Origin: Trichosphaerium sp. ATCC 40318
Taxonomy: Eukaryota; Protista; Tubulinea
DNA: 64,000 nucleotides
Assembly: GCA_038496445.1 (NCBI GenBank)
Contig: JALMLS010000075.1
Location: 310,001-374,000 of the forward strand
Direction of reading: 5' to 3'
In this document: in pieces, positions 21,178 to 24,100 of the stretch
How the letters are laid out: each line of letters opens with the position of its first letter
How positions within the stretch are numbered: position 1 is the stretch's first letter
Position numbers and translations under genes: made by a program
Notes under the pieces: model-generated
Databases searched by the model: none
Seen by the model: only the letters and a program-made list of their open reading frames with translations
What the model was told of the DNA's origin: nothing

Positions 21178-24100
21178 ATGGAAGCGTCTCCGCTCTTACA
21201 AATAGATAAGACTGGCACTAAGCGTGTGGCGAAGTGGTCTTTTGTTACATTGTTCTTGTGCTTCGGTACGATCGTTATTGACATCGCTAGGCCTATTTTT
21301 AACGCTACTAAGCGTAGCCAATAGCTAACATCTAATTGTCCGTCTTTAGGCTTGACAATCAGTGGTGTCACGACACTGGTATCGTTGCCGTTATTTTTAA
21401 ACGCATTTGGTGATGATAACAAGTCTCCGGCCAACTTTGCCCTTCTTTTTTCTATTCTTGCGTCTTTCGCGGTGTATGGCCCATACCTACTTGTATTCTA
21501 CCTTGTAAAAAGAAATTTTTGGTACGACAACGAATTCGTCCCTAAATTGCTTTAAGCGCAGCACACTGTTTTACCATACTTATTGTCACTAAGGGATCCG
21601 CCATCGTTTAAGCGTAATTGGAAGTATTTCGTATTTTGTGGGTTTTTCCTTGGAATAGGCAATGTGCGTACCTAAAACAGATGACGTGCATGTCAAAGTG
21701 TCATGACGCTTTTCAGCGAATGTTGAGTTTTCTTTAATAATCAGAGTTTAATTTTCTTCACTAGATACTACAAGTGTATTCCGCGTTACCAACTAGAACG
21801 CCTCCGATCATGCAAGCTCAATTTTATCAAGTGAGAAATGAGCAAAGAATAATTTTATTTTTCTGAATTTTTTTTTTAGGCGTTTATGCTTTTCCTTGTA
21901 TTCTCCGATCGTCTTATTGATCCGTCACCTAATTTAAGAATGTACGGCATGATCTTGATCCTCTACAAGGCGATTTCGGATAATAAATTGCCCTTGTATT
22001 TGTCCGTGACTTAAATTCTAAATGACTTTATAGTATACATCCAGTGCCTATTATTGGCGTACTTGTAATGATTGGTGGATTAATTTTTGGCGCTATAAAG
22101 GATATTTTATACAAAGGAAACTTCTTTAATGAAGGCCCTTTCTGGGAGATGATGTTTCTTTTAAGTTTTTTAGTAATCGGATTTGCAGGCGCTATACATA
22201 AGGCGTACATTGTACGCTTTGATTTTTTAATCTTATTTTTTTGTCACGTGATTGTTTCTGTTTTTTTCTCAAAACGTTATCACGTGATCCTTACTTTTTT
22301 GATTTAGTATCGCCGTGGCAGAAGAACAGGTGCGAATCCAAGAAATCAATATGCCGATATGCTATTGCTTGTTGTATGGGGTGCCTTGTTTCAGTTGCTG
22401 ACTTATTTGGCATTGTTTTGGTTGGATTTCATTCCAACCTTTGGCTATAACTCTTCCGAATTTATTGACGTTCTAAAGTAAGTGAGAACTAATGGTTTTA
22501 TTTGTAGTTGTAGTATTAACCCTTTTTAAAGACATCTCAAAGATTCCGCACAATGTTTCTTTACTGGTTCAAATGGATGTGATCATGCGTTTGTATATGG
22601 TTTAGTTTATACAATTGGCACTTGTGTATATAATTTATGCTTGATTGGACTTGTTGGAGCTTATTCTTCACTATATCGTTCAATCGCTCTCCTATTCATC
22701 AGTCCACGTACGTTGACTCAAAAAAACCTGAAGGAAATTAGTCAGTTGATGATTAATTTATTTTTTAGTTGCTGTTGCTTTCTGGCTTATATTCCCATCC
22801 TTGAATTATAATGTTGGTCCTACACCTTTATGGGTTGCTCTTGGTGGTTTAGGTGTTATCACTCTTGGTCATATAATACTTAGAGGGTGGCATTACTTTG
22901 AAGAGCTTAGACTTGCTGATGTACCACGATTTCATCCATCACTAGTAGAGATGGAAGAAGAGGAAGGTAAAAGCACCAAAGCATTAGAGCGAACTTTATA
23001 GCTAATTACTATTCATAGGGGGACTTGCTTTGGTAGGGGAAGATGATAAAGATGAAGATGTAGAGCCAGAAATTACTCCTGAAGCGACAGCTGGTTTCTT
23101 TTCTTTACTTACTTATTCTTGGGTTAGCGCAATGATCAAAAAAGGTTACAAGAAAACATTACGAGTACGTCGAATGCAACGTCATGCCTGGTTTTTTGTC
23201 GCCAGTCTAGTCTGCATCTTCTAATTTGTTTATAGGACAGAGATATTTGGAAACTGGCTCCATATGATAGAACAGAAAAGAATTATTTGCGAGTCAAGAA
23301 ATGTTGGGAAGAGGAGTTAGAGAAAAATGAGTATGTTTGTGGCGATGAGTGCTTCTTCTGACAAGTAATTAGGCCGTCAATAACAAAGGCTTTCTTCAGA
23401 GCATTCTGGGCTGACTTTATAGTTCCTGGTATATCTCTTGCTATATGGACATGTTCATCAGTAGCAGGACCTGGCTTCATACTGCGTGAATTACTAATAT
23501 ATTTTGAGAACCAAGATACAAGGAGGTATGACGGATAAGAAGTATAAGAAAGCCCATTGACTCTTTTTAGTGAGTATACTGGTTGGCTACTAGCATTCGG
23601 CTTACTAGCATCATCCACCGCTACGATACTAACTGTACAGTTTGCTTTTTATCGTAGTATTCAGGCTGGTGTTCGCGTACGCTCAACATTTTTCGATACA
23701 TTCTTTCTAAGTGGATTTTTCTACAGGTTAAAGGTGCATTTATGCATATACTCTATGCCAAGGCACTCAAACTCAAGTCTCTAAGTACTCCACTTGGTGA
23801 AGTTATCAACATAAGCTCGAACGATTCTTATCGTGTATTATTCTTTTGTCGTTTTGTGCATAACTTATGGGCTGCTTTTGCTGTATTTCTTGGTACGTTG
23901 TTTACTTTATTTTCTTAATACGCTGTGTATCCGTTGTTGACGTGAACTAGTTGTTGCTATCTTACTCATTCTTGAGCTCGGATGGGCTGGTGTTGTCGGT
24001 GTAATTACAACGCTGTTGTTGTTTCCTTTACAAGGATATGTTGGAAAGGTTATTTCAAAAGTTCGTTCTTCTGCTATTAAGAAAACAGACAGACGTGTTA

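Follow-up and report, generated by a model that had tools for sequence, protein, structure and literature searches.

A ten-helix membrane domain probably fused in frame to the N-terminus of an ABCC4-like pump

A gene of about 40 exons on the forward strand (21178-28680) probably encodes a real fusion of a ten-helix membrane domain to an ABCC pump, in a predicted polypeptide of about 1,650 residues. It lies in the window (the whole 64,000-nt stretch of Trichosphaerium sp. ATCC 40318 DNA that was analysed), which has the character of eukaryotic DNA: about 37% G+C and rich in introns. From its N-terminus the product would comprise a ten-helix domain of about 365 residues, resembling the DMT (SLC35-type) carriers, then an acidic cytosolic linker that spans the joint between exons 9 and 10, the L0 lasso, and an ABCC4-like core. 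In-frame fusion of a domain of about ten helices to an ABCC core is supported as the most economical reading of the gene structure; that one gene holds both a DMT-like ten-helix domain and an ABCC4-like core is, on balance, the reading we take to be right. ABCC pumps are known with no extra domain or with a TMD0 of five helices, the origin and role of which are still under debate: the present protein is probably an ABCC with an N-terminal membrane domain of a new type. If this is true, the TMD0 position accepts quite different membrane modules tethered by the same lasso, and the protein offers a natural test case for the physical coupling of a secondary carrier to a primary pump. The original prediction was of a CRT-like carrier fused to an ABCC pump in place of TMD0: the fusion itself is supported as probable, with an in-frame domain of about ten helices joined to an ABCC core, but the CRT-like identity is not supported, and the domain is better seen as an addition than as a replacement of TMD0.

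Table 1. Coordinates (positions in the window) of the exons, the joint and the pump core of the predicted fusion gene.
Feature	Position	Strand	Content and basis
Exon 1	21178-21265	+	ATG and MEASPLL...; basic tail at the N-terminus; helix 1, first half; hand model
Exon 2	21350-21521	+	helices 1-2; open, GT-AG flanks; hydropathy peaks at residues 22-49 and 61-79
Exon 3	21594-21663	+	basic cytosolic loop, start of helix 3; hand model and hydropathy
Exon 4	21765-21830	+	end of helix 3, start of weakly hydrophobic helix 4; hand model and hydropathy
Exon 5	21880-21941	+	helix 4; identical in the gene model trained on the ABC part only
Exon 6	22034-22211	+	helices 5-6; hand and automatic models
Exon 7	22308-22477	+	helix 7 after a basic cytosolic loop (YRRGRR...); beginning of luminal loop 7, NSS sequon
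Exon 8	22532-22707	+	remainder of loop 7 (two Cys), helices 8-9; hand and automatic models
Exon 9	22769-22966	+	helices 9-10, acidic cytosolic tail; hand and automatic models
Intron 9	22967-23018	+	52 nt, GT-AG, phase 1, GTAAAAGC...TTCATAG; fusion joint
Exon 10	23019-23164	+	acidic linker and ABCC L0/lasso motif; donor GTACGT at 23165
Exon 11	23236-23330	+	ABC part; hand model
Exon 12	23373-23525	+	start of TMD1; aligns to ABCC4 77-125
ABCC core	23019-28680	+	L0, TMD1, NBD1, TMD2, NBD2; about 31 exons, about 1,260 aa; stop codon 28678-28680

The upstream coding region, whose exons were read by hand, consists of nine exons (21178-22966) encoding about 393 residues. The introns between exons 1 and 9 are all of the GT-AG type and 49-101 nt in length, and each of them, if retained, causes a stop or a frame shift; with exon 10 included, the hand model is open across 443 codons and nine canonical introns. 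A small dynamic-programming gene model, trained on the ABC part only, recovered exons 5 to 10 and the 22966/23019 joint exactly. The same model over-split exons 1 to 4, and the boundaries of these four exons, which come from the hand model alone, are less sure. An in-frame stop upstream of the ATG at 21178 lies at about 21154. The feature had been drawn at first from 21178 to 23170; its start is retained, while its end moves to the end of exon 10 at 23164. As had been predicted, the opening residues MEASPLL fit a [DE]xxxL[LI] signal: E-A-S-P-L-L is read directly at the ATG and would lie on the cytosolic side. The motif is so short, however, that the match is weak evidence of a sorting signal.

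Two neighbours lie on the same strand. A 330-codon open frame (19657-20649), a candidate gene with a proline-rich, extensin-like stretch that falls below the Pfam cut-off, ends 528 nt upstream of the ATG at 21178; a gene of RCC1 repeats (RLD; 28888-29912) begins about 207 nt past the stop codon of the pump, and shows that real spacers here are short.

Across the 365 residues of the N-terminal domain, hydropathy analysis detects about ten hydrophobic segments, a count that is partly by eye, helix 4 being under the threshold. Segments rich in K and R are found at the N-terminus, between helices 2 and 3, and between helices 6 and 7, while the loop between helices 7 and 8 (39 residues) is acidic and carries two cysteines and an NSS sequon. 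This distribution fits a domain with its N- and C-termini both in the cytosol: since the number of helices is even and the K/R-rich loops alternate, the C-terminus is predicted to be cytosolic, which is where L0 must be. The upstream domain is thus laid out differently from a TMD0, with its five helices and extracytosolic N-terminus, and has the layout of the DMT type – ten helices with both termini on the cytosolic side – as judged from hydropathy and the distribution of K and R.

Analysis of the downstream part shows an ABCC protein from its first exon. Compared to sequences in the PDB, exon 10 aligns to residues 186-223 of ABCC2 (E 0.003), 204-237 of MRP1 and 211-238 of Ycf1, that is, to the L0 directly after TMD0, and all of its 27 matches are ABCC proteins. 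Among the exons of the ABC part Pfam finds ABC_membrane (2.3e-13) and, in four exons, ABC_tran, which forms two regions. For the TMD1 exon (23941-24195), 57 of 57 PDB matches are to ABCC proteins or CFTR, the best being ABCC4 (2.6e-16); positions 23951-24135 align to ABCC4 223-303. The number of exons in the ABC part was taken from the automatic model, in which some boundaries are approximate; this model was wrong at 23236-23400, where it was corrected by means of the alignment of exon 12 to ABCC4. Both nucleotide-binding domains carry their motifs, read directly from the sequence: Walker A (GSGKT and GAGKST), signatures (LSGGQKQR and SLGQRQ) and Walker B (YLLDDPL and VLVLDE). NBD1 has the degenerate Walker B typical of ABCC proteins, of the form DDPL...SAVD (SAVDQHVG), whereas NBD2 is canonical. 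To judge from these motifs and alignments, the pump part is a complete short ABCC4-like pump whose catalytic motifs are intact. By residue count exon 10 starts about where ABCC4 itself starts: because the core is collinear with this short, TMD0-less protein from about its first residue, the ten-helix domain appears to have been added to a short ABCC, rather than exchanged for a TMD0 as the prediction had it. Save for NBD1 compared to NBD2, no paralogues of the gene are present within the window.

The two parts are joined across intron 9. On its removal ...EMEEEE is followed by a split glycine codon (G/GG) and by exon 10, in frame, and the acidic composition runs on across the joint. That excision of these 52 nt would bring the two parts into one frame was a claim of the original prediction, and it is borne out by the open model; the intron is of ordinary character. 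Splice-site matrices derived from the remaining 38 introns of the locus place its donor, with 7.8 bits against a mean of 7.4, at rank 17 of 38, and its acceptor, with 8.4 bits against a mean of 9.5, at rank 14 of 38; such scores are reached by only 0.4% of the other GT and 2.8% of the other AG sites between 21000 and 29000. Its length compares with 41-123 nt (median 58) for the other introns of the gene, and its A+T content (0.67) equals the intron mean.

The introns of this gene share a further property. About half of the approximately 39 donors between 21266 and 28521 begin with GTAC (13 with GTACG, plus three with GTGCG) and not with GTAAGT or GTATGT: such a preference at 5' splice sites is out of the ordinary for this genome.

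Homology and family searches of the N-terminal domain were made exon by exon, each exon, of 20-65 residues, supplying by itself too little score. Eight exons of the upstream domain, compared to Pfam at E values up to 10, matched neither PF08627 nor any DMT or ABC family. When exons 2, 4, 6, 7, 8 and 9 were compared by phmmer to every PDB chain (E up to 10), the matches were to membrane proteins by chance only, with no PfCRT, NST, TPT or YddG among them. An exhaustive phmmer search with exon 8 of 1.84 billion representative proteins gave no match, and a word search with exon 6 of 5.8 billion clusters found no protein sharing a word, so that conservation does not speak for the fusion. Family signal came instead from Atlas protein-language-model features, read as leads only, since first matches of at least 0.9 are also obtained for 4-10% of shuffled proteins: the best cluster for exon 8 is Nuc_sug_transp (0.93, 203 shared features), with UAA, SLC35F, CRT-like (rank 13, 0.86) and TPT as other named neighbours, and the best for exon 6 is SLC35F (0.91, 161 shared features), followed by UAA, Nuc_sug_transp, EamA and TPT. 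For both exons the ten best matches with a family share one family or clan, among those listed the DMT clan. A check for a 5+5 internal repeat, by local alignment of exon with exon and comparison to shuffles, gave one pair with z 3.1 among 19 comparisons, the others being below 1.5. From the look-alikes of two separate exons together with the topology, it is probable that the N-terminal domain is DMT-like; given that no relative was found among the 1.84 billion representative proteins, the carrier-like part may be a very divergent, or a new, branch of the DMT clan.

A metagenome scan with exon 9 returned two loci of 54% G+C, which were rejected as chance matches: the likeness is confined to a single helix and no other exon matches. 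At these loci (L001 8099-10117; L002 about 10001) there is a 672-aa bacterial Lamin-tail-domain protein, the C-terminal helix of which resembles helix 10.

A rather different reading of the locus invokes two products. The upstream exons would encode a stand-alone ten-helix protein, ended by retention of intron 9 or by polyadenylation, and the pump would be made from a separate ABCC transcript that starts at a promoter within the upstream gene and has a small 5' exon of its own, a start codon other than AUG, or a leader added by trans-splicing. Retention of intron 9 does give a clean stop 11 codons on: 11 residues are added before the TAG at 22999-23001, so that a stand-alone product would end at 23001, just as had been foreseen. 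The ABC part, which corresponds to a whole short protein of the ABCC4 type from about residue 1 on, could moreover work by itself. However, the reading frame of the pump is closed by a TAA (23003-23005) 13 nt before the intron 9 acceptor, and its first in-frame ATG (23132) lies beyond the first, conserved half of the lasso motif; this confirms the earlier statement that the ABC part is without an ATG of its own before the lasso. With conserved lasso residues upstream of this ATG and the frame closed behind them, the pump needs an upstream coding exon. Space is a second obstacle, also recognized earlier: same-strand neighbours are separated from the gene by 207 nt (28680 to the ATG at 28888) and 528 nt (20649 to the ATG at 21178), so that the 52 nt available here are too few to hold both a 3' end and a promoter; these 52 nt, besides, resemble an ordinary intron in length, in composition and at both splice sites. 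Finally, the acidic linker of exon 10 contains, at 23041-23063, three out-of-frame ATGs (GAAGATGATAAAGATGAAGATGTAG). If transcription began inside intron 9 they would constitute a short upstream ORF, a further argument against a separate pump mRNA. We consider two products to be quite unlikely.

The nature of the N-terminal domain can also be read in other ways. The fusion may be real and the domain not of the DMT/CRT type at all: lineage-specific, such as an anchor of the TMD0 kind that has been expanded or duplicated and serves only targeting, stability or partner binding. Such an origin, which we regard as improbable, would agree with the failure of the upstream exons searched to match a DMT family by sequence, with the lack of relatives in the exon 8 phmmer and exon 6 word searches, with the absence of a significant internal repeat at the level of exons, and with the general knowledge that TMD0 domains are poorly conserved and have a role in trafficking. 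It is at odds with exons 6 and 8, for which the best named Atlas clusters are of DMT-clan families only and include no ABC clusters, and with the topology (ten helices and a cytosolic N-terminus, where TMD0 has five helices and an N-terminus outside); nor do the eight upstream exons searched match an ABC family in Pfam. To a similar degree doubtful is that the domain belongs to the CRT-like family (PfCRT, plant CLT), with the pump acting on glutathione, peptides or their conjugates. No exon searched matches PF08627 or PfCRT, and in the exon 8 ranking CRT-like comes after the clusters of nucleotide-sugar transporters, SLC35F and UAA; for exon 6 it is not among the Atlas matches listed. CRT-like is nevertheless one of the exon 8 look-alikes, and both the ten helices with cytosolic ends and the position of the longest luminal loop, between helices 7 and 8 and with cysteines, are as in PfCRT. 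The spacing 'C-D-x-A ... N-L ... P' after loop 7 is presumably also similar to that of PfCRT, a lead only. The cysteines themselves differ in number: loop 7 of PfCRT has four, invariant and essential (C289/C312 and C301/C309; stated for Plasmodium CRTs alone; PMC13063427), and here there are two. Membership of the CRT-like family, as originally proposed, is thus unproven.

If a DMT-like domain is indeed fused to an ABCC4-like core, the domain would stand where long ABCCs have their TMD0, with L0 tethering it next to the pump within one membrane. Substrates would be expelled from the cytosol by the pump with ATP; the ten-helix module could be a carrier for a related solute in that membrane, returning or supplying a co-substrate, or else could have been reduced to targeting and anchoring, like TMD0. 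Retained carrier function is slightly favoured because the ten helices and nine exons are all intact. Going further, we put forward tentatively, as one possibility, that a secondary carrier (SLC35/CRT-type DMT fold) and a primary ABCC pump work together as a chimera, sharing a membrane and handling linked substrates. The pump might, for example, load glutathione or peptide conjugates into a compartment from which the carrier would return the released thiol or peptide: such a chimera would have pumping and recycling built into one unit, and evolution would here have found, independently, another way to fill the role of TMD0 in long ABCCs.

A search of the literature found no report of a CRT or DMT domain fused to an ABC transporter, and each known system resembles the predicted protein in part. 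Accessory N-terminal membrane domains, there for targeting or partner binding, are described for TAP1/2, TAPL, ABCB6 and HMT-1, but these are extensions of 4-5 helices on half-transporters of the ABCB type, whereas here a ten-helix, carrier-like domain would stand on a full ABCC. Members of the DMT clan (SLC35/nucleotide-sugar transporters, UAA, SLC35F and TPT) provide the nearest clusters for exons 6 and 8 and match in helix count and topology, although the upstream exons searched have no similarity to them at the level of HMMER. The CRT-like proteins (PfCRT, Arabidopsis CLT; PF08627) share the ten helices, the cytosolic termini, the long luminal loop 7 with cysteines and, by look-alikes, the DMT clan; they differ in the lack of a profile or sequence match exon by exon and in having four rather than two cysteines in loop 7, and those that are known, about 400-450 residues long, stand alone. 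Short ABCCs of the ABCC4/MRP4 type give the best PDB matches of the TMD1 exons and are collinear with the core from about residue 1, but ABCC4 has its own methionine just before the lasso, which here is reached only by splicing from the 393-residue upstream region. In long ABCCs TMD0 serves targeting, partner contacts and trafficking and is poorly conserved, while L0 is needed for function (MRP1, Ycf1, SUR1). With these proteins (MRP1/ABCC1, ABCC2, Ycf1, SUR1) the predicted fusion has in common an extra N-terminal membrane domain placed before the L0 lasso and the TMD1-NBD1-TMD2-NBD2 series: where they have a TMD0 of about 190 residues, with five helices and its N-terminus outside, the domain found here has about 365 residues, about ten helices and a predicted cytosolic N-terminus, is without sequence likeness to TMD0, and has its look-alikes in the DMT clan.
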